From: Bugula neritina
Taxonomy: Eukaryota; Animalia; Bryozoa
Direction: 5' to 3'
Length of the DNA stretch: 64,000 nucleotides
Assembly (NCBI GenBank): GCA_964035545.1
Contig: OZ037772.1
Span: forward strand, 9,107,150-9,171,149
In this document: positions 376 to 35,093 of the stretch, piece by piece
Layout of the letters: the number at the start of each line of letters is the position of its first letter
Numbering within the stretch: position 1 is the first letter of the stretch
Program-made: the position numbers and the translations under genes
The notes under the pieces: generated by a model
Database searches by the model: none
What the model was told of the DNA's origin: nothing
The model's input: only the letters and a program-made list of their open reading frames with translations

Positions 376-763
376 TGTGATAGTTTTGTGGGTTATGAAT
401 GAAACTAGTGCTTTACATGCTTGTTATGAGAAACAAGGCGAGAAATAAGGTAGAAGATAAGATAGCTTTATTGTAGTCCGAGTGATCCAATAATCTGTAT
501 CCAGCGAGCTCCAGTAGTAGACTGAATCTACACTGAAACTCGCTGGCTTTTATATACATGCAGGACAAAGACATTCCTTTGTTTGCCGAGATCGGAGGCC
601 TGAAATGCCGAATATCGGCACCTCGGGAATCCGAAATGCCAAATTTGGCATCTCGGCACTTCGGTATTCCGATATGCCCAGAATCGGCATATCGGTGTTT
701 CAGAGGACCGAAGTGCCGATCTCGGCAACAAAGGACACACACACGCAACATAAATTTACCACA
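376..763 (-). repeat. 3' LTR (388 bp)
   Basis: TGTGATAG...TTACCACA; about 8 substitutions versus 7830-8217 by eye. Minus-strand TATA-like TATATAAAAG at ~547-556 and AATAAA at 467-472. Confidence 0.96.
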
Positions 764-775
764 CACACCCCCCAT
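764..775 (-). promoter_or_regulatory. Polypurine tract (G-rich)
   Basis: ATGGGGGGTGTG on the minus strand immediately before the 3' LTR. Confidence 0.7.
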
Positions 776-1044
776 CGGAAAGCATGCTTTCCGATAAAGA
801 GGCGTACACAACATCAAACACACAACAGGAATGACACGACAATAAAACACACAGTTGATAGGTAACATACAAAAAAACAATTACGGTAGCCATGCAGTGA
901 TAATAATAAAAAAAACAAGGAAAATTGTGCACACATAAGAAAAACGGAGCATGGATAAGTACATAACATTACATGAAAGAATTTACATACACATAAAAAA
1001 ACAAAGAAATAAGAACAGGAAAAAAAAACAATATACAAACAGTC

Positions 1045-2757
1045 TCATTGGCGGTCCCCAGATCGGCCCTGCTCCAGGCGGCTTACACGTCTCCTGAGTT
1101 GCCCCAACTCCTCCTCATACCTGCGGAGCCGCCGGCGTAGGTGTTGTACTTCTTCCGCCAACTGGGCCGACGTCTGGTGTCTGGGGCGGTCGGTGGTACC
1201 ATGGCTGGGACGTCGCTGGCGGTACGTCTGCTTCTCGCCCGCCGCCGAGGGCCGGGGGCCCAGGTCCGATGAATCGGTCCTGGCGCCTAGTCCGACCCGT
1301 GCCAGCACGACCCGAAGTGGCTGGGTGGCTGCCGGTTGGGGTGTCGCGGCGGGCTCTCCTTCTTCCTCACGAACAGGCCTACACGCTGGGAATCCCAGAG
1401 CGAGAGCAGCCCGTTTATGGGGATCTGCCACGTGTGGCAATATCAGGTTCCGAAACTCGGGAAAAGAGGCCTGGTCTACAGCGAACGTGTAGCCCGTGTG
1501 GCAGTGAGCTATGCGTTGATGTCTCAACACATAGTCTCTCTAGTAAGAGAATTCGCCACACGGGCAAAACACGTTGATGTAGTGCTGTGGGGCGTGTACA
1601 CGTAACCGCCGTGCAGAGGAGAACTTCCTCTTGCACTGATGGCAGATGCGGTTGCCCGGCTCACCGCAAGCTTCACCAATCTTAAGATTGGTGGGTCCAG
1701 TCACCCAATACTGGCGGGCGACCAGGGCCCGAGGCAGGGCCAGTATTGGGGAGTCATCTTCTTCGGCTGTCAGGTGGTCGCCGTGTAGGATGCCCGGCTG
1801 CTCCCCGGCCATGAGCTGAAGCTCGACCGGTTTGGGGTCAGGGCCACTAACGATGGTGGAACACACCTCTGTGGAGGAGGTGGCGGCCTGCTGGCTGTGA
1901 GAAGCCGAAGCAGGGGCCAGTGGGAGAGGGGAGTCGGACTGACTGGCCTCCTCAATGTCCATACGCTCCTCTAGAACAGATAGTAGAGGCTGTGATAAGC
2001 CGGTCTCACTATCGCCGAAATTCGGCACAGGTGTGTATGGAGTTAAATTAAAAACCGGGGGCCGAGGTGTATCGCAGAAATTGACTGAGCCCACGTCATG
2101 ATTCAACAAAGTATCAATGGCAGAGTCATCTCCGAGATCCATCTCGGCCTCCGGTTCTAAGAAATCAGAACCCAGTAAGTCTAATAAAGACCAGTCTACT
2201 CTAGTTTGACTAGACTTTGTAACTGGAGGATCTAATCTAGAAGAAATACCTGATTGCGTGTCTGGTAAAGTAATTCCCATAGCTGCTGATAGCGTCTGGA
2301 GAACAGTATTTAAATCAAACTTAGTATCAGAATCAGAATTCAACTTAAGCTGTAACTGACGTGCGAGCTGTGTGAAATCAGAACTAGAAATGGCCGAACC
2401 TCGTGCTTCAGAAGTATTACCTGCCAAAGCCCAAGTCACGTGGCCCGTGGGAATTTCCCCCGGATTTCGAAAAGACAACTCGCGTGATCGAGTGTCTTCC
2501 GAAATTCGGTCGGCCGTTTCTTCTTCTTGGTGAAATTCTCCGGGGTGATGGAGGGAATTTTCAACCAAGATGGGGTGGTCGTCAGTACGGGGGGGGGGGG
2601 GGGGGTTGTCCTCGTGAGGGGGCCACTCCAGGTGCCCTTCAGCATAGTCTGCCAGATACCTGGGGGGTCTTCTTGATCGCTGGCTCCTCTCAATTGGAAC
2701 AGGCACCGGTGGTGTTGGTGGCTCCTGGGCTGCCCTAGTAGGGGGTCCCGCCTTCAC
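1045..2757 (-). CDS. Extra ORF or long integrase tail: low-complexity region, two C2H2-like zinc fingers and a C-terminal coiled coil (one in-frame TAG at 1540-1542)
   Basis: ORFs 2757-1540 and 1530-1045 are in the same frame. CHQCKRKFSSARRLRVHAPQH fits C-x2-C-x12-H-x3-H; CPCGEFSY*RDYVLRHQRIAH is a second finger. Heptad repeat LAEEVQHLRRRLRRYEEELGQLRRRVSRLEQ. Confidence 0.7.
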
Positions 2758-4169
2758 CCAGCATGGGGGTGGGGGTGTCCTCCCCCAGGGAGGGTGGTGG
2801 TCCTAGGGCTTGCTGCCGTTCCTGTTCCCGCTCCTCTCTCTGCTGTCGCTCCAGCTGCTCTATCAAGGCGGCCTGCTCCTGATCCGCCTCTCTAGGAACT
2901 ATAATTTCCACCTCTCGGGGCTGGGTGGTCCGTCCTCGACGGTTGGGCTGGCGGTGGGGCTCCAGGAGGGGTGGAGCCTGACCCACAGCGTCTGGGCTGG
3001 CATGATAAAGTTTGAGGCGCTGCTCACTCTGGACGGAGATCTGTCCAGAGCGCTCCACACGGTACGTGTGGTTGGGCAGCACCTCCACTACGCAGTAGGG
3101 ACCGACGAATTTGGACTGAAGCTTAGCCGACTGTCCGCGTCGCCTACGGTAGCTCACCATCCAGACCCAGTCTCCCACCTGGTACAACGGGGGCTCCTCT
3201 GAGTCCTCTGTGCGGATCTGCCACTGCTAGGCGCGCAGCGCATCATGAGCCTTGCCCATGATGTCCATCAGACCCTCCACATATTCGTGTACCGGTGACT
3301 CGGAGGCAGGAACATGGTATGTCAGGTGTTCCGGGACCGGCGTCTCTCGGCCTAGCATCAGGAAGTTTGGGGTCTCCTGCGTGGCGGAGTGCGGTGTGCT
3401 GCGGTAGGCCCGCATGATTTGCGGCAGCACCACGTCCCATTCTTCCTGACCTCAACCAAGGAGCAGGCTCCTGAGGGCGTCACCCAACATCCTGTTGTTC
3501 CGCTCGACGACTCCGTTCCCTTGCGGGTGATATGGGGTGGTCCGACTCTGGTTCACCCCCCATATTTGGCAGAGGTCTCCCATGAGCTGGGACTGGAACT
3601 GGGCGCCCTGGTCTGTATGTATCTGCTCAGGTAAACCGAGGTAACAGAACACATGTTGGTCCAGGGTCCGGGCCACCGTGGGGGCGGTTGCGTCTGGAAT
3701 AGCCAGAGCATCCGCCCACCGGGTAAAGTGGTCCGTGAGCACCAGTATCCAGGTGTTCCCTCTGGCGGATAAGCCCGACGAGGTCTACCGCCACTACTTG
3801 CCACGGTCGACCAGCGTACAGCCGGCGTCGACCAGTGGTTTCCGTGGGGCGGCCATGCTTGCTAGCTTGGCAGACCTCGCATTGCCGTACCCGCAGTCGT
3901 ACGTCCCGAGTCATTCCGGGCCAATACCAACGCAGCCGCAGACACCTGATGACTCGACTGACTCCAGAATGAGCCTGCTTATGGGTGTCCCAGATCAGTT
4001 CCCGCCGGAGGGCCCGTGGACAGACGACGCGGTCCCTTGCTTGCTGGCGGTTGTCTGCTGCTAACGTTATCATCAGGAGGCCATCAGGACTAACCTTGAG
4101 GGCGTCCCAGTGACGACAGAGGAGTTGGAACTCAACGTCTCCCTGCCGCTGCTGTTCCTTGCTCGGTCG
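2735..4169 (-). pseudogene. pol: pol: integrase (HHCC, DDE, GPY/F), split by frameshifts and a stop
   Basis: THKQAHSG...CEVCQ; VAVDLVG / IHTDQGAQF / NGVVERNN; KFVGPYCV. Spread over ORFs 3627-4073, 3452-3742, 3227-3433 and 2735-3187. Confidence 0.92.
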
Positions 4170-5891
4170 TCAGCCCTCCTTCTTGGCCCGGAAGATGTCC
4201 GCTACCGCGCCGGGTAGCGTCTCCTGGAGTCGGCACAGCTCCTTGACGTTCTGGTGCAGAGTAGGGTTGGCGTGGAGCGCCTGGACACCGTCCTGGTGGG
4301 TTTCGGTCCGAAGATGGCCGTGCTCCCACAGGTAGGCGGTGCCCTCCACTAGCTCCGCTTCCACGTCAAGGCGAGCGGGTCCCCCGTCCCGCTGCTCAAT
4401 GTGCAGGCATTGCTTACAGTCCTCTACCGGCCGGCGGCTCATGCTGTCGGCGTTCCCATGCTTCCGGCCTGCAGGGTGCTCTCTCTGGTAGGAAAACTCA
4501 GCAAGAATCTCTAGCCAACGAGCCACCTGGCTTGAGGGCTCTGCACATTTACACAGCCATATCAGTGATGCATGGTCTGTTCGCAAACGGAACGATTTCC
4601 CATACAGATATGGCCGAAAGTGCTTGACCGCCTTGACTACTGCTAGGAGTTCCTTCCTAGTGGTGCAGTAGTTCTTCTCGGCGGCCGCGAGAGTCTTGCT
4701 ATAGTAAGCCACAACCACCTCACTTCCACCCTGGACTTGAGACAGGACGGCTCCCACGCTGTGGTCGCTGGCGTCGGTGTCCAGGATGTACTCCTTGGCT
4801 GGATCAGGATACGCCAGGATTGGCGCTTCCATTAGCCGTTGCTTGAGGTGGTCGAATGCCTGCTGCTCCTCCTGTGTCCACTGCCACCGGACTCCCTTTT
4901 CGGTCAGCCGATTTAACGGCTGAGCCACTCCTGCGAAACCAGGTATGTACTGCCGGTAGTACCCTACTAGGCCCAGGAATGCACGCAACTCAGGGAGGTC
5001 ACGGGGGACAGTCCACTCCTTCACAGCTTGTACCTTCTCTGGATCGGTAGCGACCCCATCACGGCCAGCCACATGGCCCAGGTACGTGACTTCTGGCTGC
5101 AAGAGTGCGCACTTGGAGGGCTTCAGCTTCAGTCCAGCTGCCCGGAGACGGTCAAAGACCTCCCGCAGAGGACTGACATGAGTCGAAAAGTCTGGGGAGA
5201 TGACAATGACATCGTCCAGATAGTTGAGGAGGGTCTTCCAGTGTAACCCACTGAGGACTTGCTCCATGAGCCGTTGGAAGGTTGCCGGAGCGGACGTTAG
5301 TCCGAATGGCAGTACTTTCCACTTCCAGAGCCCGTCGCGAGTAATGAATGCTGCTTTGTCCTGGGCATCAGGACTGAGGGGCACTTGCCAGTACCCGCTA
5401 AGCAGATCCAAAGTACTGAAGTACTTGCTACCCACGAGGGCATCTAGAGACTTATCTATCCGTGAGAGAGGGTAGGCGTCCTGGATGGTAACGCTGTTGA
5501 GTCTGCGGTAGTCCACGCAGAATCTCCAGCTACCATCCTTCTTCTTGACCAGGACCACTGGGGAGCTCCACGCACCGTGGGCAGGCTCAATCAGATCCCG
5601 GTCCAGAAGATCCTGTACCTGTCGGCTCACCTTCTTCTCCTTCTCCGGGCCTAGACGTCGGGTAGGCTGCCTGATGGGAGTGGTGCCGGCTGCCAGAGGT
5701 ATTTCGTGGGAGATAACCTTAGTCAGCCCCATGTCTCCATCGCCACGACTGAAGACATCACTGTACTCCGCGAGTAGTTGAGCCAGTACTTGGCGTTCAG
5801 TACTACTCGTACAGTTTCCGCATGCTCCACCATACAGGTCAGCCAGGTGCTCCGGGACTGCTCCTCGTCTGGTGTGAGGGAGGACCCACAT
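4170..5891 (-). pseudogene. pol: pol: reverse transcriptase + RNase H
   Basis: WSSPVVLVKKKDGSWRFCVDYRRLN, LPFGLTSAPATFQRLM, YLDD; RNase H motifs LDTDASD, KELLAVV, TDHASL, NADSMSR. Confidence 0.96.
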
Positions 5892-5970
5892 CCGCCTCCT
5901 GGATGGAGTGGTACTTCCCCACCAGCGCTCCGGCCGATAATCGGACAGGTTCCGTGAAGGGGTTGATGCA

Positions 5971-6897
5971 CTACACGAGGAGCTCTTGCCGACAATCTAG
6001 CCGATTCAGGCTGTTCGCTAGTCGGATGGCTCCGTGCGTTCCCTCAACCATCCCCAGGCCGGCGATCCCCTTGCAGTTGACTCTGCAGCGGAGAGTCGCC
6101 TGGGATCTCCCCGAAACCGTGCAGTCCCGCACTACCTGGACTCCGCCCACCAAGGGCCTGCCAAACTTGTCAACACAGACAAGTTCCTTCCCAGCCATCA
6201 CCACCACTGACTTCTGGAAATCCATGTGACACTGGTGTTTCTCCAGAAAGGGCATTCCCAAGATGGCGTCCTCCTTCAGCTGGCTGACTATGAACGTCTC
6301 GTGAATTGCTTGATCACGGACGCGTCCAGGCAGTGAGATGACGCCGTAGAAAGGGATGCATGATCTGTCCGCCAACGTACCATGCGCACCTTCATACGGC
6401 TCGAGGCTCACCCGCTCTCGAGCACCAAGAGTGTCAAAGAGACGCCTACTCAGCAGGTTGGTAGTGCACCCAGTATCCAGTAGGAATGTGGCAGCTTTAC
6501 CCGAAATCTTTCCGGGCAAGAAGTAGCTGCTTCCGTATGGCTGGGTGCTCCTGGAGCGGTCAGTCTCTGGGGGAGACACAACTTGGGTTCGCACAGCGGG
6601 CCTCCTCTTCGTCTTAGAGACAACGGGGGTTTTCTGAGGTTGGGAGGGTAGCTTGGGGTACTCTTGCGAGTAAGCTGAATCCTCCTCCACAACCTCCTCG
6701 GGCAACCCCGCGAACCGGTTACGGAGTGGCCAGGCTGGAGGATCGGGTAGACCTTGCGGTCTTCGAGATCTCCGGTTTGCTTGCCACTCGATGTAGGTCG
6801 ACTCTGGAGAGGTCTCTTCTGTTGTCCTCCGAGTCCTATCCCGGACCGGATTGGCGTGGGGCCCACGGGTGGCGGAATTCACCGTGAGCCTCGAGTG
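5971..6897 (-). pseudogene. pol: pol N-terminal part: retropepsin aspartic protease
   Basis: FLLDTGCTTNLLS catalytic motif and DAILGMPFL. In the -1 frame relative to gag. Premature TAG at 5971-5973. Confidence 0.9.
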
Positions 6898-6903
6898 TTT
6901 AAA
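6860..6903 (-). promoter_or_regulatory. -1 programmed ribosomal frameshift signal
   Basis: T TTA AAC heptamer in the gag frame (6903-6897), 6-nt spacer, then stem GGCTCACGG/CCGTGGGCC. The -1 frame is the protease ORF. Confidence 0.8.
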
Positions 6904-7778
6904 GGCTTCTGTCCCTTAGGGCAGTGCCTTCTCACATGTCCTGGCATCCCGCACTCCCAACAGGTGGACAGAGGGGGGCGGACAGGGTCGTCCCGCGAGC
7001 GGGGAGCCCGCCTGTTCGTCTGGTTGCGCTGCAACTCCGTCACCATAGTCTGCAGGCCTTTCATCATGCTCATCAGCATGTTGAGCTGTGTCTGCTCAGG
7101 CGACGGAGTGGCTGCTGCTGCCACTTGTGGGCTTGGGGGTACCTCTTGTGTATCTCCGGCCACCTGGCGAGCTGCGTAGTTCGCCTTCCGTGGTTCTTCT
7201 ACTTGGAAGTAGGCCTTCCCCATCTCTAGTGCCTCTTCCAGGCTCTTGACCTTGGCGGCCAGCCAGTACCGCTGGAGGTCTGGGTGGTTCACGCTCTGGA
7301 AGAACGCGTTAAAAACGAGGCGCTTCCAATCTTCGCCAGTGGCGTGACCGAAAGCAGCCTGAGCCAGGCGCTCTACCTCGTTAGCGTGATCTTCCAGAGG
7401 TGTCCTTCGGTCTCTCCTCATCACTTGTAGCTGGTCTGACGCCTCTTCCGTGGTCAGACCGAACCGGGCCCTAAGAGCCCGCATGATGTGGGCTTCGTCG
7501 GGTCCCAGTGCGAAGTTCCTGGCCCGGCCTGTCAGACAGGCCCGGAGTTGGAGGACGCGCACCCGTACTGGCCATTCAGCGGCGGTGGCCACGTCCTCGA
7601 ACTCCTTGATGAATTGTTCCATGTCTCCATCTCCTCCGAAAGTCGGGGGCTAGAGGCGATACCTGTCACCAGGTGGTGCCTGTCCTTGCCCCCGCAATCC
7701 TTGGAGGGCTGTGACCAGCGCCTCAACAGTGAGGGCTGGTGGTGCTGCTGCCTCAGGGGCTGGGTCCCCTGGGGCCAT
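6879..7778 (-). pseudogene. gag: gag with CCHC zinc knuckle; 5' part broken by a 1-nt frameshift and a TAG
   Basis: ORF 7622-6879 ends with CWECGMPGHVRRHC. The likely true start is ATG 7778 (MAPGDPAPEAAAPP...), which joins ...RYRL*PPTFGGDGDMEQF only through a frameshift near 7690 and a stop at ~7650. Confidence 0.85.
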
Positions 7779-7808
7779 CCTATTCCTCTCAGCAACTAGC
7801 TATTCGTA

Positions 7809-7828
7809 GAATCCCACCGCTGCCACCA
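7809..7828 (-). promoter_or_regulatory. Primer-binding site complementary to the tRNA-Leu 3' end
   Basis: Minus strand reads TGGTGGCAGCGGTGGGATTC, 1 nt from the 5' LTR. The plus strand GAATCCCACCGCTGCCACCA matches the 3' end plus CCA of metazoan tRNA-Leu(AAG-type) as I recall it. Confidence 0.88.
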
Positions 7829-7829
7829 A

Positions 7830-8217
7830 TGTGATAGTTTTGTGGGTTATGAATGAAACTAGTGGTTTACATGCTTGTTATGAGAAACAAGGCGAGAAAT
7901 AAGGTAGAAGATAAGATAGCTTTATTGTAGTCCGAGTGATCCAATAGTCTGTATCCAGCGAGCTCCAGTAGTAGACTGAATCTACACTGAAACTCGCTGG
8001 CTTTTATATACATGCAGGACAAAGACATTCCTTTGTTTGCCGAGATCGGAGGCCCGAAATGCCGAATATCGGCACCTCGGGAATCTGAAATGCCGAATTT
8101 GGCATCTCGGCACTTCGGTATTCCGATATGCCGAGAATCGGCATATCGGTGTTTCGGAGGACCGAAGTGCCGATCTCGGCAACAAAGGACACACACACAC
8201 AACATAAATTTACCACA
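7830..8217 (-). repeat. 5' LTR (388 bp)
   Basis: Near-identical copy of 376-763, adjacent to the PBS. Confidence 0.96.
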
Positions 8218-12012: not shown

Positions 12013-15000
12013 ATGTCTTCTCAATTTTTCTCAGTATTACGATGCAACAACAGTGTGACAAATATTACTCAATATGTCAGCAGGTAATAAAATATATCAC
12101 TGTGTCAATTTATCAATGTGTCAGACTATAATTGCGTCAGTCTATCAATGTGTCAGTCTATTAATGTGTCAGTCTACTAATGTGTCAGACTATCACTGTG
12201 TCAGACTATCACTGTGTCAGTCTATCAATGTGTTAGTATATCAATGTGTCAGACTATCAATGTGTCAGACTATCAATGTGTCAGTCTATCAATGTGCCAG
12301 TTTATCAGTGTGTCAGTCTATCAATGCGTCAGTCTATTAATGTGTCAGCATTTAATAAAGTTTTTTAAAGTTCTCGCAGATAGTTGAAATGTTCTAATAC
12401 GGTGACAATAATCAAAACTTTGTCAGAGAAATTATCCAGCTTACAAATAAGTACAAATAGAAATGCTCTCAATCGGTCAACCTAAAAGGAGCAACACTGC
12501 TAAATAAGTCAGCATACTGTCGGATGCGTATAATCAGTGTTAACATGTCTCCTGACTCTTAAAATTGTACTTTATCTAAAAAGTTGACGTGTCCATCTGA
12601 AGATACTGTAAATATGTTAAAAACTATTAACAAACCAAAACAGCAATTTATGAAAAAATTTAAAATGTTTTAATTTTTTGAACACTTTTTGGCAAAAATT
12701 ACACACATCTGATTAGTAAAAAATTAAAATGAGTCCCACGTACATGTAGGATCTATTTCCAAATGGTTCAAGTAAAGATAATGTTTATATTATTGCATAA
12801 TTTTTCTTGTTTCTGCCAGAATTGATCTATAATTAACTAATCTTTATACTTCTCAACTCAATTTATAGGTGGCAGCACCAAGGAAGAAGATTCATCTCTA
12901 AGTCTACTTTGAATAGAACTCCATTTCCTGCCAACATATCAGAGTTGGTATCAGTGACGGACTTTAAAACTCATCTCAACATAGCTAAGCGGAAAGAAGA
13001 TGCAACTTCAAGAGAGCATTTAAAATATTATATGCCCGAATTTAAGTGAGTTTTTGCAAGGTTTTTTTTATCAAAATCTAAAATTCACTGTTTCTAATAA
13101 CGTGTATAGCATCAGAAAAAGAATTGATATAGATCAGGAAATAAGTGGTTACTATGAATGTGCTGTCTATCATTGAGTAGGCCCTAAATGCCTACATCGT
13201 TGAATGTTATTTTTTCTCTACATGTGCTGAATATGCTATTCTTAATATGTATAAAAGTACATTATGAATCATAACCCATGAGCTTTTAGTTTGTTTTAGT
13301 ACAATAGACAATAAAAATTTTATATCTTTTTAAATTTTCAAAATTAGATGCAATTAAATATTTAGTTTTATCTGGCCACCTCTGGAATTATTTCAGTAGC
13401 CTAAACAAAGACCTTTGATTAAAAAAGAACTGTGGTTATACTTCATGCATGCTATAATATGATGTATCTAATATGTTGACATATGAATGATTATAATAAA
13501 ATTCAACATTTTATTTTTAGAGCGTCAGCAACTGTAACCATCAAACCAGATACAATAGGAGAAAATGATGAATGGGAGATCGGGTGGATTACAGGTTGCA
13601 AAAGCTTTGAACACAACTATTTATTTAACTCTTATGAAGCCTTTGGAAAATGGTACATACCAGCATTGCTTTTAGGTTTGTGTCTGCTTACACACCGCAT
13701 TTCTATCACTCATAAGATAAGAATCTAAGACAGATTGCATGGAGTCTAAGATAATTTTTTTTTTAATTTTTGCTTTGTGGTAATTATTAGTATTGAGCTA
13801 TAACTGTAATAGTTTCAGTTCAGTGGCTAAAACTATTAACAAAATTCAATATAAGTACTATAAGTTAATAACTCTCACTCAACTCACTCAAGCAAGTTTA
13901 TAGTAAGCTATCCCTGTGAGAAACTCCTGATGGAAAGGGTTCTTGATTGTACGGCTAAGGACTTGTTTAGATGAGGCACAGGAGCAATTATGACTGGGTG
14001 CTTTTCCTAACATCAACAATGGCCTTTACCGGGGTTTGAACCCATGACTTCATGTTCTCAAAGCAAACACTTTAACCCCTAAACCACGGCTGCTCTCTAT
14101 AAGTACTAGTTAATAGTTGGTAAAAAAATGAAACATTATATATATTAGTATTTACATCACCAGCAATACAGTAATGTAGTAATGTGACATTTTATTCTGT
14201 CCTCACTTGCAATTAGGACACCTGGTGGAGATTGCTTTTAGACAGATCTCTGCTTGGAACACAAAAGCCTACCTGACATTATCAGTAGTTAAGAGTTAAA
14301 TCTAGAACTTTGTACTTTAACATTACACCTGTCCCTAATACTAATATGGCGACATTTGCATATGCAACAGATTTGAGAAAATAACATTTGATAAATATAA
14401 ATTGAAAGCTTTTACCAATATCTAACCTATATAATTATATCTACAAATATTTAGAATAACAGATGGATTAGCATTTATTATGTATACATACAAAAATGAA
14501 GTCTATTACATTTAAGATACATTATATGAAGTTTAATTTTTATGTAGCAAGATGGATACAGTATTTAATATGAAATATCAGATATATTAGTTTCAAAACA
14601 TACATTCAATTTAATATTTTACATACTATGTCAATTTAATTTCATTTAGGAGGTCATTAAACATTGAACAAATCCCGTTTCAAGTATACCAGACCTTGAA
14701 AAATAATATATATTCTATACTATAATTTATATAACATAGTTTTCTATTCTATTTTTAGAAGAAACAGACATGATTCATGTGTTTCATGATGGGAAAGGGC
14801 CTTGGCATAAAGTTTCCAAGGACTCGGTAAGTTTTTCATCTCAGAATACTGAGAGATGTTCATTTTCAGCTTTCTCCAAACTAAGTAAAATAACTTACAA
14901 CCGTATTATAGTGATGGGTTTACTCAGTGGTCCCCGTGGTGTAATGGTCACCACACTTGCTTGCAAGCCAGAGGTCTCGGGTTCGATTCCCAGTGGAGGC

Positions 15001-18934: not shown

Positions 18935-21900
18935 ATGCTCATTAATAAACTGAGAACTATTGCTTCAGCTCTTAAAAGATGCCAGCAACTAAAGAAATGG
19001 TCTTGTTCTAATATACCACACAACTTCCACACTTCTAGGTATGTGTGCATCTTACACTTTTACTGGTTTCAAGATTCCAGTTTCAAACTTTTAAACTGAA
19101 TGTTGTTCTCTAGCTGCAATCAGTTGAGAAAAAGCATTAATATTGTGAAATTTGGTTTATACAACAATAGGATTAAAAGAACATTAGGTAAACTGTGAAC
19201 AATTTTTTAATGATACATGAGTTTTGTTATATAATGATTCTAATTTTGTGAAATATAAAACTTTTGCCACCACCATATGGGATTCAAACCTGAGACTTCC
19301 AGCTCGCAAGCAAGCGTTAACCATTACACTGTAGAAACTATACTGCGACCACATCAAATTTAAAACTGTTTAAGTTGCAACCCATTTTTTTTAAAAATTG
19401 TTCCTGCAAGTTATACATTAAGGTGAGCTTGAAAAGTGCTCTTTTGTTAATGTTACATGTGCTCCCATTTAGGTGCAGTAAAGGATAAATTGAGATAGCT
19501 TAAGTCTTTTAGATTTCTTTATAAATTTTTGTTTGGGGCTCCGGTTGAAGTGTTTGTGAGAACACAACTTTTTTTTGCTACATTTCTAATCTAGAACACA
19601 GGCTTTTCTCAATTTCCTCATTACTGCACCTATAACTGTACCTCTGCTTGTGAACACTCATGGTTAGTTGTTTACAAACTAAAGGTTCTTTTCAACATCT
19701 CATTGGAGACTGGCTGGTCTACCGGACAACATAGAGAGTGTGGTTGATGTGTTACATCTGGAATATTCTATAAAAAAGCCTAAACATCCTGTAGAGATCT
19801 ATGCAAGTTCAATTGGCCCAAAATTCAACATGTATAATCTTTTGTGAGTTTTTCTCCCATTTTCCAGTCATACTGCAAGTTGTAAAAATTTCAGTATCAA
19901 CTGTAAACTATGAGTAGTTGTGAACAAAATATAGCTCAAGTAACTCTTAAGTAGCTCTTAAACAATGTTACTTAAGTAGTTCTTAAACTATGTTACTCAA
20001 GTAACTCTTAAGTGTTAATAGAAAATCAAAAGTAGTTATATTACCTAACTATAACTTAAATGTATTATAGTTCTTGACAAAAAAATTAAGTATCTAATAA
20101 GTTTAAGCTAATTACAACTTAAGTGGGTCTTAGTCAAATAAAATTAAAGTATAGCTATATTAACCTACTATAATTCAAGTAGCTCTGAGGTCTTGACCAA
20201 CTCTACATTAAGTGGCTCTTGGCTAATAATACTTTAAGTAACTTTTATAACTCAACTATAACTTGGGTAACTTCTTCAACCAACTGCAAATTAGAGTAAA
20301 TTTTGACCAACTATATAACTATACATTTTATGTGAACAGTGTTAAGGCATTAGTACACATACGTAAAGAGTGTGATGATGACGAGTGGACCATTGGCTGG
20401 ATTCAGGGTATAAACACAAACTTAGCATCTCATTATGGTGACTATGGATGTGTAAGGGTTGTCAACCCTACCCTTGCACCAGGTAAGCATTAAATAAACT
20501 CACACAAGTCGAAATCTCTGTGCAAAACCCCTGATGTAAAGGGAGTTTTAAGCAGGCTAAGAACTTATTCATATGTGGCACAGGAGCAATTATGATTAGA
20601 TGCTCTTCCTAACATCACCAATGGTCTTTACTGGGGTTCAAACCCATGACTCCGAGTTTACCGAGCAAGCACTCTAACCCCTAGACCACAGCTGCTCCCT
20701 ATTCACTATAAGCTCTACTAAGCTAAAACTGTAACCCCTAGAGAAAGTGAAAGCAGTTTATGATGTAGATGCAAGAGTAGCAAAAAACTGCTGATTTTTG
20801 ACAGTTTTTATTTCAGCCTTAAACCAAATTTATTAGGTGAATTAACTGTTTTGGCAAGTAAAGCTTTGTTCTACTGCATGCACGTAAATAAAAAAAATAA
20901 AAATTAAAAAAATTAAATAGTTATTATCTTGCTGCAATATATGTGAAAAATTATTATTAGAAAAATACTGTTTTAATTTCTAATCCCCCAAAAATTAGAA
21001 TTCTATAAGTTTACAAATTAGTGTGTAAATTAGAATTTATTAGAGTCAGCTAGAAATCACTTCGTATGCTTTTGAAATCACTTTAAGGATTAATATGTCG
21101 CAATATATCTTGTTTGGCTTCAGATCCAAAAGACAAGAAATATCTGACTAAAGATGGCCACCAGACAACAGACCAGTATCTGCAAAGTTTAGAACGTAAG
21201 GCTAAGCTTTCTATACTGTAAAAGTTGTAATAAATTTAGTCTCCACGGTCAGTTATACACTACCTCAATTTCCATTATCATATTATGGGAATGGATTTTT
21301 TCATTTGGCTAATGGAAGTAGTTTTATCAAATGAAACTGCAACTATAAGTTAATGCAAACTGCAAACCGCAAATAATGCATAAAGAAAAGCAGTGATATA
21401 GTATGTTTCAGGAGTAAAAGTCTATAAACTAATATATAAATAACTCTCAGTTCATAACTTTATGGCAGTTCAGAGCTACCTTGTATCATGCAAATGTTGT
21501 AATTATCTTGACTTAATAAAGTAGATCAGCAATTTTAAGTGTTACAGCTTTTCAATTTTCTATTCAGCACTTAATTGTTCAAATTTGTAAACGGTTTGTT
21601 TAGCAATAATTAAAACAATGCAGTAGGTACTCGATAAATAAATTTTGTTTTCTTTACATGGTTTTCCTCAAAAACACATTTTATAAAATATTTGCTAAAT
21701 GGATTAAAAATGATCAATTTTTGAACATAGCTTAATGAAATATGTCTTTTTTCTTGAAAACATGGTACTGCTAACTATATAGAAAACACATAATATATAT
21801 ATTCACTGTTCTTATTTATAGATGGTTACGAGTGGTCAAATGATTCAGATGGAAGTTCTGAACTTCCCTGGATGTATTTCTATACTGTAAGTTTATTTCC

Positions 21901-24900
21901 TGATGTAGTGATGAGATCACCCATCAGTCTCCGTAGTGTAATTGGTTAGCACACTTGCTTGTCAGCCAGAGGTCTTGGGTTCGAATCCTAGTAGAGGCAA
22001 AGTTTTTTTATATAAGCTATTTCGGCCTTTAGTGAAATGTAGTAGTACTTCGAGGGAGTTGAGTAGACAGGAGAGCCTGAAGACTAAAGGAGTAGTAGCC
22101 AGGCCAGTGGAGTTGAGAGAACTGGGTGGGTTGTAGTAATGAATTTACCCAGTTTACTATAATGCTCTTTACTAAAGGCCAAAATAGCTTATAAAAAACT
22201 TTGCCCCCTTCTGAGACTTGAGACCTGAGACCTCTGACTTGCAAGCACGTGTGCATGGGTGAACTCATCACTACACATGCAATATTTTATATTCTAAGGG
22301 CACTTGCATCACTTGTTCATTCTGTCAGCTATACCAAAGTATGTGCTATAACATGTTTTGGTTGACACTATTAGTTTGGTAGATTATAGCCAATTATATC
22401 TCAATTCTTCTACTTTGAGGGCATAATCTGACCCTTGGTGCATATGGTTATATATTATATATGACATAAAGCAATTGCCTATATACTATGCTGTTAGCAA
22501 TATATAATTTTATTAATTTCAAATTTAATTTAAATGGTATCCTTTTCCATAAATTCACATTATGCAAATGAATGCCTGTACGGATTGTTTGTGGTTTGCA
22601 TTCACTTATATTTGCAGTTTCATTCAATATGTAACTATTTTCATTAGTTGGGTGGAAAAGTTCATCCACGATAATAGAAACACAAGTGATTATGCAAATC
22701 ATGGATAAAAAACTCATGCAAGCTTATAGTCGCTATCCCTGTGAGAAACCTCTAATGCATGGAAGGTGTTTCGTTAAAGTGGGCTAAGGACTTATTCGAA
22801 TATGGCACAGGAGCAATTATGACTGCATGGATGCTCTTCCTAACATCACCAATGGCCTTTGTCTGGGCTTGAACCCATGACTTTGCGCTTCCTATGAGGC
22901 GAACGCTCTAACCCTTAGACCACGGCTGCTCCCTTGCAAATCATGAATGCCTGTACAGAATTATTTGTTGCTTGGGTTTGCATAATGTTATGGTTGTAGT
23001 TTCATTAGATCAAATTAATTCAATTAAGTCCTGAGTGAAAAATTAGTTTGCATAATGTGAATCATGGAAATGTAATAAATAAAATGTAATAAATAAAAGA
23101 CCTGTAATTTGAGAGTTGTGTTGAGAGCGTTTTTGTAAATTATTTTACTTTAGAATGCAAAAATATTAGATAGCTTTCAAATGCATTAATTTTGAATTAT
23201 GGTTGCAAATAAAATTATCAGAAATTTTTTACTCTCCTATGCATAATATTATATGAACTATATATAACTTTCTATAAAATATTATAAGTAAAACATACAG
23301 AATATTTTCTGTGATCTATAATGCTCTACACCAATCTTATACCATGGTATAAAGCATTTATTAGCTTTGCGTTTAAACCTCTTAAGTCTTTACCTCTAAG
23401 TTCAAAAGAGTTTTGTAATCAACACAAAAAATTTAACTCAGGCATTAAAACATTAAAAAATTTGAATTCTTTTCATTAAAAACTCTATCATGCAATCTTT
23501 TTTTAAATAATTTGCTGAAACAGAAATATTTCTTTTTACAAACTCGAGTTGGAAATATTATTATTTTTTTTAAAAAAAGAATTACAAAAAATTTACAAAA
23601 AAAATTTACATTATATTTTAATTACCAAAATTGCTACCTTACCGTATATACCTGTAGTTTGGGTGTTTCAGATAATTCAATTCTCCCATCACTGAGCTCA
23701 AAAATAAATTTTCTGCTTTAGAGAGAGCCTAACGTAACTGACACTAAAATGATTCCGTGGGTGTGTCAATTATTTTCAACTGACAAGCCTTTCATGCTGC
23801 CTTCATGGGAGCATCCTTTTAGCAAAGAAAAACAACCGACTCTCACTAAAGTCACAAGAAAAGACCAATTCCTTTTGTGGCTGGCTATCAAATCTAAAAA
23901 ATCCAGTAAGTTGAAAAGCTTAAAAATGGAAGATATAAATATTAGCACTTTTTCTTTTATTTCAACACTGAAAAAACCTTGTTATACTAGGTTACATTTA
24001 AAATTTTCAACTACCTAAAACAAAAATTTGTTGCCTCATAAAACAATTGTGAACTGGGAACTTTATTTAGTACAGATCAGCAAGTTGTGATCAAACGTTA
24101 AAGTTTGCTCAAAATTAATTGGAGTTTACTATATTTGGTATGTTAATGTGCTGATTATATAGTAAAATCTATACAATACAGTAATGGTATTGATATTGGG
24201 TAATCTATACACTAAAGTAATGGTATTGATATTTGGTTAATCTATACAATACAATAATGATATTGATATTGGGTAATCTATATACTACAGTAATGGTATT
24301 GATATTAGGTAATCACATAGTAATATGGTACTGGTATTGTAGAAGAAGTAAGGGTATTAAGAACTCTCAGATGGAATACAAGTCTACATGCTGACTTTGA
24401 CGTAACAAAGCCTCCTTTTGACGGAGGCATCACAATCACCTTCCCAGGTAATTGGCAGCAAATCTGATTATAATCGGCAGCTGGTTTGATTATATTACTT
24501 TGTTAGCCTAGGGCCACACTGTGCGTGTTTTCGCATGCAAAAATTGAAACCACAAGTAGCAAAGGTGTCCACTGTAGCGTCAGTGATGCGTGATGAATAA
24601 AGCTTTCATTTTTAAATCGCACTTGCTTTCAATAAAACGCAATTCACTGGAATGTAGCACTAAAATAAAGAAATTGGGCTTGCTGAATAACTACCAGCCA
24701 ATTAGGTGACGACGACAGAGACAATTCGCACTTGCGTTGAGAATGCTGAGCGACAAGTGCGAATGTTTTCTCAACGCGTACAGTGGACACCTTTGCTACT
24801 TGTGTTTTCAATTTTCGCATGCGAAAATACGCACCATGTGGCCCTAGGCTTAGTGTTTACGCAGAGATACCAAATTTTATGTATCAAATTGAGGTTTTTG

Positions 24901-25580
24901 AAAAGTTGAGTCCAAAATTTGAGTATTGAAACTAAAGAAATCTTCTATAAGACAAAAAAATTGCTTTGTCGATTAAAATTATATGTTAATTATTGAAAAT
25001 ATACGATTAACAGATTAACACATACATGTAGCTGAAACTTTGTTGATCAATTTATTATAAAAATAAGTTTCTGATCAATTTATTTTAAAAAATCCGATTT
25101 GATTCTTTAAAAATTATTGCTCTATTTGAGTATAGTTTTTTAATATAAATTGTTGAAGGCGCTCTTTTAAAGAGTGCATTTATATTCTAGGCAATAAATG
25201 TAAATGTGAAAAACATACCGGTAATATGATTTTTAGAAAGACTAAAGTCATAGTTGTTAATATATAACATAAAGGAATAAAATAAATTTTTTGTTAGTAA
25301 AAAAACAATAACAAATGTTGATGGAGCTATTTGTGCTAATAAAAACTTTTTTATTTCATAATTACAGTAGGGCTAAAATTCTCTAAAGACACTACTGATG
25401 TAACAGAATGATTTAATATATGAATATTTTTGTCTCTGTAACAGATGAGGATAACTATATCAAACTGTTGGACAAGAATATAGATATTCCTCCGAATGTA
25501 TTGAAATTTCCTAGAGCTAACAAGGCCTTTACACACCTCTGGCACCCAAAAGATTCCCCAGATAACCCAGTAGTAAGTGG

Positions 25581-25628
<48 letters not shown>

Positions 25629-26806
25629 GATTTTTATTGGTGAATGATTCAAATTTAATAGATTTTTATTAGTGCTGAAATGAAAATGGGCATTTGTTTA
25701 GGGTTAGCTCTTTTGCAAAGAAGGAAAGATTTTACTTTCAGGAAGTGTATGATTATGAGGGTGGCCTGTTACCAGACAATGGTCAATCAGCTTCGGAACC
25801 ATCGGGTAGAAGCAGCAGTTCACCTTCTAAAGTGAATTTATCAGACTCAAACAGTTCTGACGTCATGTCTGCTCCAATAAAGAGAAAGAGATCAATTTCA
25901 ACATCTCCTAAAGAGTCAAGTTTCGAAGGTGTGTTGTGAATTTATGCTTTCACTAATTATGGGTATTTATAAAAGCTAAATCAACACTGCCGACTCGGAG
26001 TAAAGGCCTGGCCTCACAATCGTGAAAACCACACAAAATCGTGTGACCATTTTCGTGAGTTATCCTCTCATTATGACCAGCCACACACATAATAAATAGT
26101 CCGTGAATGAGTTTTGCACAAGATACGAGAAACAGAAAATTGCCAAATAGAGAAACATGGTGGAAATGAAATTATTACCATTGCTTAAATTCTCTTGACC
26201 AATCAAATAGTGCTTATTGTCGATTGTGATTTTTCATTTATCGTCATCATTGTGTACACCCAACAATGACAATTTTATTTGAATTCTCTCAAATTTTCTT
26301 GTACAAATATTTTTTCAAGTCAAATAGACGATTTCGATTTCGTGTGATTCTCACGATCGTAAGGCCAAGCCTTAAGAATATAGTTTATTTAGGCGAATGA
26401 TACAAGAATAACTATCAAGATACACAAGTAGGCCTATTACATAATTTCACAAGAGTATAAACACAACATAACTAGTCCACTGCTATCAAACAACTGTGCG
26501 CTATACGAGAGCGCGTTGTCAATCACCTTATCCAATTAGCCTCATCCCTATCGTGGACTATACATCCCATTGTTCCGAGTGCCAGTATATATGCTGCATA
26601 TAGACCTCCTCTGGTGCACGGTAGATAATAGAGCAATCAGACAAGGAGTTGCCTGTTCGATATAATTATATAAATTCCTTACAGGTGTAGCCAGCTCTTA
26701 TTCAGGAAAGAAAAGGAGAGGTGGCTCATTCAATAAACCAGCTGCGTCAAGCAGCGGTCTCGCAAAAGATGCTGCTAAGAAGCCTGAGAAAGATTCTGAT
26801 TCCTAA
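18935..26806 (+). CDS. FAM78: FAM78-like paralogue B (exons 18935-19038, 19685-19843, 20340-20482, 21822-21886, 23722-23905, 24343-24447, 25445-25572, 25742-25928, 26685-26806)
   Basis: WTIGWIQG, SNDSDGSSELPW, LTKVTRKDQFLLWLAIK, VLRTLRW, IPPNVLKFPRAN; Ser/Lys-rich tail; splice phases consistent. Confidence 0.85.
19258..19345 (-). repeat. tRNA-like repeat family 2 copy, diverged
   Basis: GGATTCAAACC...CTCGCAAGCAAGCGTTAACCATTACAC. Confidence 0.6.
20505..20699 (-). mobile_element. SINE family 1 copy
   Basis: Same consensus as 13890-14096. Confidence 0.85.
21904..22275. repeat. Family 2 composite: one full unit plus an inverted partial unit (hairpin)
   Basis: Left arm ~21904-22045 is reverse-complementary to ~22165-22275. 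Confidence 0.75.
22715..22933 (-). mobile_element. SINE family 1 copy
   Basis: Same consensus. Confidence 0.85.
24165..24340. repeat. ~36-bp tandem repeat (AATCTATACAATACAGTAATGGTATTGATATTGGGT)
   Basis: 4-5 degenerate copies running into the exon-6 acceptor of B. Confidence 0.8.
24506..24849. mobile_element. PIF/Harbinger-type MITE
   Basis: ~70-bp TIRs starting GCCTAGGGCCACA / TGTGGCCCTAGGC; TTA TSD at 24503-24505 and 24850-24852. Confidence 0.85.
25582..25624. repeat. (TA)n microsatellite
   Basis: Direct observation. Confidence 0.95.
25932..26683 (-). mobile_element. Putative solo LTR (~380 bp once the nested MITE is removed) forming intron 8 of paralogue B
   Basis: TGTTGTGAATTTAT...ATAAATTCCTTACA termini (TG..CA, imperfect inverted ends). 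GGTG TSD at 25928-25931 and 26684-26687. Minus-strand AATAAA at 26384-26389 and a TATA-like motif at ~26586. Confidence 0.7.
26004..26372. mobile_element. PIF/Harbinger-type MITE nested in the solo LTR
   Basis: TIRs AGGCCTGGCCTCACAATCGTGA / TCACGATCGTAAGGCCAAGCCT; TAA TSD at 26001-26003 and 26373-26375. Confidence 0.8.
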
Positions 26807-28146
26807 CAGTGAAAGGATGAAAAATCAAAAAATCCTTTCACTTGCTGTGTCTATACGAGCTTAATTAGTGCACAAATTGTTGCTGAAGTTCCAATTGCAG
26901 TTATTAATAACTGCTTTTGTTAAAATTTGTATTTAGACAGAATAAAAGCTCCTTCTATATATAATAGTTATTTAAATCTCAAAATCTTACATAGGTACCT
27001 AAAAATGTTTAAATAATTATGAAAACTTTTGAATAGAACAATAATTAATGACAAAAATCAATTTCTAAGACTTTGAGTGCTAAAATAGATTTATGTTTAA
27101 TATTGTAACGTTTTACAATCAATTTAAATCAAGTCATCCAAACTCCTACAGATACTGGGATAATCAAATATTAAAACTGTTTGCTCGGTGAAGCTGTAAA
27201 AACATCATTTTACATTACACTACGTAAAGCAATTCTTGGAAAAAAAAACTTTAGTGAAATTTCTTTGTTCTTTAAAACTCTGACTAAATTATTTTTCAAT
27301 TGTAGATATTTTTTATTACCAGCAAGATACTTTGTATACAGTTGATTTAGGTTGCTAGCGCATGTTTAATGCTAATATAATTTTAACAAGTATTTTCCAC
27401 TATAGTCTCAAATTATATTTATAGCAAATTTTGAAGATATAGTTAAAAGTTTATTTCCTAGCTATATATACTAAAATAAGTTGTTTATTTTGTAAAAAAA
27501 TAATTGATCTAGTTCAAGTTATTTATAAGCCATAGAATCATCTGAATCTTTTTTATCCTTTGCGTCAGTTGCAGATGTGTCAGTTGCAGATGTGTCAGTT
27601 GCAGATGTGTCAGTTGCAGATGTGTCAGTTGCAGATGTGTCAGTTGTCAGTTGCAGATGTGTCAGTTGCAGATGTGTCAGTCGCAGATGTGTCAGTTGCA
27701 GATGTGTCAGTTGTCAGTTGCAGATGTGTCAGTTGCAGATGTGTCAGTTGCAGATGTGTCAGTTGCAGATGTGTCAGTTGCAGATGTGTCAGTTGTCAGT
27801 TGCAGATGTGTCAGTTGCAGATGTGTCAGTTGCAGATGTGTCAGTTGCAGATGTGTCAGTTGCAGATGTGTCAGTTGTAGATGTGTCAGTTGCAGATGTG
27901 TCAGTTGTCAGTTGCAGATGTGTCAGTTGCAGATGTGTCAGTTGCAGATGCGTCAGTTGTCAGTTGCAGATGTGTCAGTTGCAGATGTGTCAGTTGCAGA
28001 TGTGTCAGTTGCAGATGTGTCAGTTGTAGATGTGTCAGTTGCAGATGTGTCAGTTGTCAGTTGCAGATGTGTCAGTTGCAGATGTGTCAGTTGCAGATGT
28101 GTCAGTTGCAGATGTGTCAGTTGCAGATGTGTCAGTTGCAGATGCG

Positions 28147-35093
<6,947 letters not shown>

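Follow-up and report, generated by a model that had tools for sequence, protein, structure and literature searches.

An antisense solo Ty3/gypsy LTR as a candidate spliceosomal intron in the last coding exon of a Bugula neritina gene

New introns are rare in metazoans. With regard to introns derived from transposable elements, the introners constitute the closest group described so far. LTR retrotransposons account for about 12% of the classified introner families, and in a Copia family of Panicum virgatum both full copies and solo LTRs make functional introns (PMC12130899). Among introners, the use of splice sites taken from target-site duplications, which leaves mRNA length unchanged, is on record (PMC9860276); for DNA-transposon introners, the recruitment of splice sites from duplications has been described by Huff et al., 2016, as cited in PMC9860276.

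The insert studied here interrupts the last coding exon of a gene of the bryozoan Bugula neritina, termed gene B. It resembles the Copia introners of Panicum virgatum in that an LTR or solo LTR constitutes the whole intron body and in its probable origin by inter-LTR recombination (PMC12130899). On the other hand, those introners are multi-copy, with many intron-forming copies and support from annotation and RNA (PMC12130899), whereas the Bugula insert is one old copy of an animal Ty3/gypsy family that is decayed and has few members, and it is a candidate intron judged from sequence alone. In common with DNA-transposon introners, the candidate splice sites stem in part from the duplication and mRNA length would remain unchanged (PMC9860276). 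In the Bugula case the GT derives from the duplication, while the AG combines the last A of the element with the first G of the duplication, and the element is a retrotransposon LTR, whereas DNA-transposon introners are MITE-like (PMC9860276). A sequence-only reading of this DNA had proposed that a solo LTR inserted into coding sequence had become an introner-like intron and had regarded an LTR-derived case as notable. The first label implies many intron-forming copies and does not suit one old insertion of a family that is decayed and present in few copies, and the novelty was overstated, since LTR and solo-LTR introns have already been published (PMC12130899). As the same applies to splice sites supplied by duplications, the present case is modestly new at most. 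We consider it an even chance that a fixed solo gypsy LTR has acted here as a constitutive intron of an animal gene from a time before two Bugula lineages split, with both splice sites arising upon insertion from a GGTN target and the CA end of the LTR.

Anatomy of the insert

The window, i.e., the whole stretch of 64,000 nucleotides that was analyzed (G000:C8:9107150-9171149, within a 216-Mb assembly), is eukaryotic and AT-rich. The insert occupies positions 25932-26683 and has TG...CA ends (TGTTGTG...CCTTACA), beginning with TGTTGTGAATTTAT and ending with ATAAATTCCTTACA; read as inverted repeats, these termini match at 11 of 14 positions. The direct reading places one copy of a GGTG target-site duplication on its left (25928-25931) and one on its right (26684-26687). 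The candidate donor GT is located inside the left copy at 25929-30 (context AAG/GTGTGT, with the slash marking the junction), and the candidate acceptor AG at 26683-84 (context TTCCTTACAG/G) takes its A from the LTR and its G from the first base of the right copy. Local translation after exact removal of 25929-26684 (756 nt) yields GAA GGT GTA GCC and a frame of 40 codons that ends ...KKPEKDSDS, with the stop codon at 26804-06. Without splicing, an in-frame TGA on the plus strand (25937-25939) ends the protein at ...FEGVL. In all these respects the sequence-only reading proved accurate: the TG...CA boundaries with their imperfect inverted ends and the GGTG direct repeat, the position of the GT in the left duplication and the composition of the AG, the repaired frame and the stop in the unspliced form were found as it had described them, and its estimate of about 380 bp for the insert without the nested element agrees with the measured 380 bp.

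That nested element is a PIF/Harbinger-type MITE of 369 bp (26004-26372) with terminal inverted repeats of about 39 bp, bounded by a TAA target-site duplication at 26001-03 and 26373-75. It belongs to a high-copy family, for which at least 347 candidates occur genome-wide; 39 other full-length copies that were scored are 79-87% identical. Nine other copies begin with AGG(C/T)C and end with GCCT, and they are flanked by matching TAA or TTA in seven cases and by triplets with a one-base mismatch in the remaining two. A 3-bp TWA duplication is typical of PIF/Harbinger MITEs.

The MITE divides the LTR into two arms, both of which lie on the minus strand. The arm next to the U5 end (25932-26003) carries the family terminus at 25932, which corresponds to the end abutting the primer-binding site in two relatives, L036 and L007. 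The U3-side arm (26376-26683) has the plus-strand end ...TTCCTTACA, and the MITE-less composite of the LTR aligns up to its position 380 in relatives L002, L007 and L003. Because the window copy matches the elements of its relatives on the opposite strand, the sense strand of the LTR is the minus strand of the window and the LTR is antisense to gene B. The U3 start of the LTR is purine-rich, and its antisense reading makes the end of the candidate intron pyrimidine-rich; this U3-side end at 26683 furnishes the pyrimidine tract as well as the A of the candidate AG. According to the sequence-only reading, any LTR ending in CA that inserts at a GGTN target could repair itself in this way; the logic of this rule holds, but a pyrimidine-rich LTR end is needed as well.

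Identity and relatives of the LTR

For LTR alignments only, a 380-bp composite of the window LTR lacking the MITE was used. It aligns from end to end with L002 (75.5% identity) and L007 (65%), the termini of which are the same as those of the window LTR, and in 14 of 15 genomic LTR copies fetched the alignment starts exactly at 25932. The family is small: besides the window copy, the two arms have only 6 and 12 matches in the genome, with 65-90% identity. In L036, the window LTR aligns to both members of a pair of direct repeats (313-683 and 7226-7595, 370-bp) that are 89% identical and located 6.9 kb apart. Inside L036 and the related L035, the interiors of which have 3.2 kb in common and represent a degraded Ty3/gypsy interior, Pfam recognized remnants of RT_RNaseH (2e-20), Integrase_H2C2 (3.6e-10) and rve (1.4e-8). 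A tRNA-type primer-binding site starting with TGG is situated 1 nt past the 5' LTR copy of L036, and L007 is arranged alike; we take this site to match tRNA-Leu. The genome contains 617 occurrences of the 14-mer core of this site and none of a reversed control. All six further occurrences that were inspected (L040-L045) abut an LTR end in the arrangement CCA, one base, TGT, and the possibility that these six sites are tRNA genes was rejected on inspection. Many LTR families of the genome thus seem to rely on one and the same tRNA-type primer site.

Since the termini of the insert coincide with the family termini and its relatives border an interior of the Ty3/gypsy type as well as a primer-binding site, its identification as the solo LTR of a Ty3/gypsy retrotransposon is well supported. 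GGTG is present on both sides, an internal region is absent and the two exon halves follow immediately outside. The sequence-only reading had already taken the insert for a solo LTR and had proposed a genome search for paired LTRs with internal domains. The end-to-end relatives, the 89% identical pair in L036 and the pol remnants in L036 and L035 agree with both. A convincing polypurine tract beside the 3' LTR was not detected in the decayed L036 copy, and no clean target-site duplication could be confirmed for the older relatives L036, L007 and L002.

Another locus, L031 (G000:C8:10561500-10571499), contains a long sequence that is directly repeated about every 8.4 kb and includes an LTR-like piece of the same family. 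Its copies were rejected as a clean LTR pair about 8.4 kb apart, as they form part of a longer 94% repeat without pol open frames. Three consecutive copies of this repeat are found on the chromosome of the window, at a distance of 1.4 Mb from it, and may represent either a tandem array of elements or a segmental duplication.

The sequence-only reading had likened the insert to 388-bp LTRs within the window. The sizes are indeed similar, but there is no detectable common sequence: these LTRs (376-763 and 7830-8217) are 97.9% identical to each other and have nothing in common with the insert. The element that they delimit (376-8217) is much younger than the solo LTR and unrelated to it in sequence. 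It is a GC-rich (about 58%) gypsy LTR retrotransposon in a region that otherwise has 30% GC.

Gene B and its paralogues

Gene B is encoded on the plus strand. Paralogue matches and the reading of junctions place its upstream exons at about 19685-19843, 20340-20482, 21822-21886, 23722-23905 and 25445-25572. The first part of the terminal coding exon (25742-25928) is an open frame that encodes EVYDYEGG...KESSFE and contributes the first base of a glycine codon; its acceptor AG (25740-41) corresponds in position to that of paralogue C. The downstream part, which continues this frame upon exact removal of the insert, comprises 40 codons including the split glycine codon and a TAA stop (26685-26806). 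The terminal exon encodes a Ser/Lys/Asp-rich tail, and a putative polyadenylation signal AATAAA of gene B is located at 26941-26946 on the plus strand. This signal is conserved in L039, a contig from a sister lineage that is described below.

The gene is one of about eight tandem paralogues on both strands of the window (12888-62600), the C-terminal tails of which are very different in length and sequence. The family has the motifs EWxIGWIQ, NDSDG..PW, F..WLA and IPxNVLxxPxAN..LW in common, which may recall vertebrate FAM78. Pfam scans of the exons and of paralogue open frames gave nothing usable, and an ESM Atlas search gave nothing. An exhaustive phmmer search with exon 20338-20493 returned 0 hits, the 51-residue query being too short for the library. 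Word searches, which covered proteins of 0.55-1.75x query length, yielded no candidates for exon 23749-24015 and only the genomic ORF P0001 for the open frame with the first exon half; this length window excludes full-length annotated or transcript-derived proteins. When the first exon half was scanned against metagenomes, no match was confirmed, in a collection that may omit records near the Bugula neritina genome.

Both the number of tandem paralogues and the single genomic ORF among database protein matches to the exons would fit an unexpressed or dying gene B, for which splicing and truncation would be equally irrelevant. The searches, however, were blind to full-length proteins owing to their length window. 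All junctions of gene B agree in phase and use canonical splice sites, its exons are free of stops and the first exon half has a pN/pS of 0.35 when compared with the sister lineage. On these grounds gene B looks intact and we regard its decay as improbable.

The sequence-only reading contrasted gene B with uninterrupted exons in paralogues C and E. The terminal exon of paralogue C is indeed unbroken (28497-28147, 116 codons), and so is the open frame in the paralogue taken as E (44323-44141, 60 aa), but homology of position cannot be claimed. As the tails of the paralogues are unalignable with that of gene B, they show only that the last exon of the family is normally unbroken. A tandem repeat with copies 80-94% identical is located at 27560-28300; from 28147 it encodes the T-D-T-S-A repeats that end the exon of paralogue C, while its remainder runs beyond the stop codon of that gene. 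In addition, the window contains at least 11 copies, in both orientations, of a repeat about 200 bp long that is probably a SINE or MITE; these copies are 73-87% identical and start at 13886, 20507, 22705, 33336, 34195, 45068, 46002, 47749, 48632, 57936 and 60135.

The possibilities that the LTR landed in an ancestral intron, or that the insert is something other than an LTR, have very little to recommend them and are refuted as far as sequence alone allows. For the former, only the general frequency of transposons in introns can be cited. It is excluded by the composition of the candidate intron, which consists wholly of the LTR, the MITE and one GGTG copy and contains no older intron sequence, and the unbroken terminal exons of C and E likewise speak against it. 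The latter is countered by the family termini and by the primer-binding site and pol remnants of the relatives, which establish the LTR. Insertion into coding sequence, as proposed by the sequence-only reading, is thereby borne out. With only a transposon and one copy of the duplication between the exon halves, the reading frame of the gene must, on this anatomy, have continued into the downstream 40 codons before the insertion.

Sister lineage, age and splicing

L039 is a metagenome contig of 1467 bp (JGI sample 3300003318) and the source of P0001. It represents the orthologous locus of a lineage that is about 9% (7-10%) diverged and is occupied at this site by the same LTR and the same MITE, so that the insertion is old and common to both lineages and not recent. 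The sequence-only reading had suggested looking for the empty site in other individuals or sister species. No such site emerged: L039, the sole related lineage found, is filled, and neither an empty site nor a second copy of either exon half was found in the genome. Copies of the MITE differ by about 18% from one another, which dates the insertion of the window MITE to roughly 10% divergence ago and that of the LTR to an earlier time. From these comparisons the order of events is read as LTR, then MITE, then lineage split. The MITE of L039 is devoid of 66 bp (window 26068-26133), including an AATAAA that the window MITE carries on the gene-sense strand.

The candidate intron begins with GT and ends with AG, contains a pyrimidine tract and restores the frame when it is removed. 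With a donor context that appears acceptable and an acceptor that appears good to strong, a functional intron is plausible. On the other hand, the donor GTGTGT, with G at +5 and a base other than A at +4, is weaker than the five native donors of gene B (three GTAAGT, one GTAAGC and one GTGAGT), which counts against splicing, as does the sense-strand AATAAA within the window MITE. A clear branch-point motif was not detected in the candidate intron. The length of 756 nt falls within the range of the other introns of gene B (about 170-1830 nt) and, like the intactness of the rest of the gene, counts in favor of splicing.

L039 retains the GT, the AG, the TGA at 25937-39, with P0001 ending ...EGML, and the open downstream frame. 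The bases of its right-hand duplication (26684-26687) are the same as in the window, while the left-hand one reads GGTA and results in the donor GTATGT. The single donor change, G to A at +3, thus replaces one purine by another and preserves the site, and the last 22 bases of the candidate intron are identical in both lineages; both findings count for splicing. The first exon half (25742-25928) is 93% identical to L039. The downstream 40 codons differ by 11 substitutions (9.0%), eight of which are non-synonymous and three synonymous (pN/pS 0.84), and therefore evolve almost neutrally, at a rate like that of introns and non-coding flanks (7.7-10%). Nevertheless, they exhibit no indels and end in the same stop codon, which counts for splicing, whereas the non-coding flanks contain 10 indels in about 1170 nt. 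In a neutral simulation the downstream frame survived in both lineages with P = 0.06-0.12. A second frame is also open over most of this stretch in the window, which renders the open downstream frame not very surprising.

Much of this evidence can also be accommodated if the solo LTR remained exonic and unspliced, the protein ended at ...FEGVL and the last 40 codons were a relic within a long 3'-UTR, the GT...AG arrangement being a coincidence of the GGTN target. The neutral rate of the downstream codons (pN/pS 0.84) and the retention of the TGA in both lineages are what such a tolerated truncation would entail, and the paralogue tails, which are unalignable, very different in length and apparently disordered, indicate that a truncated tail could be tolerated. 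In addition, GGTN is a chance target for about 1 in 64 LTR insertions and the present case was singled out for its fit. The insertion would then resemble exonic insertions that truncate a dispensable C-terminus, with which it has in common the location in the last exon, the early in-frame stop and the fast-evolving tail. Such insertions, however, normally lack both a frame-restoring GT...AG and an open downstream frame in two lineages. The strong acceptor and the acceptable donor also argue against truncation, as does a frame that has stayed open and free of indels in both lineages since before the arrival of the MITE (about 10% diverged from its family; P about 0.06-0.12), and since the LTR is antisense, the sense strand of the gene receives no polyadenylation signal from it. 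We regard truncation as a tentative but serious possibility. Comparison with L039 lends weak evidence to either side, as this contig is compatible with splicing as well as with tolerated truncation. A working intron and a truncation appear to be roughly in balance.

The anatomy, LTR identity, order of events and age of the insert are shown by the sequences; its removal by splicing is the step that we infer, and an antisense Ty3/gypsy insertion reduced to a solo LTR with a nested MITE and removed by splicing is our best explanation, which may just as well prove right as wrong. According to this explanation, a full-length Ty3/gypsy retrotransposon inserted in antisense orientation into coding sequence within the last exon of paralogue B, creating the 4-bp GGTG duplication, and inter-LTR recombination later collapsed it to a solo LTR. 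The Harbinger-type MITE then landed inside the LTR, prior to the split from the lineage that is now about 9% diverged. With a target starting with GGT and an LTR ending in ...CA, the left GGTG would provide the donor, and the LTR end together with the G on the right would provide the acceptor. Most likely, the spliceosome uses both sites and removes the LTR, the MITE and one copy of the duplication (756 nt). Splicing would restore the original frame, and the insertion could thus have been nearly neutral and fixable.

The rule that combines an LTR ending in CA with a GGTN target is testable genome-wide, and the principle has already been published for other organisms, irrespective of whether the insert in gene B is spliced. 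If it is unspliced, it would be a tolerated insertion of the ordinary kind, located in a tail that is disordered. If it is spliced, it would provide a clean animal example of the one-step creation of an intron by a retrotransposon, with splice sites explained base by base and an intron gain that is datable, bracketed as it is by the nested MITE and the sister lineage.
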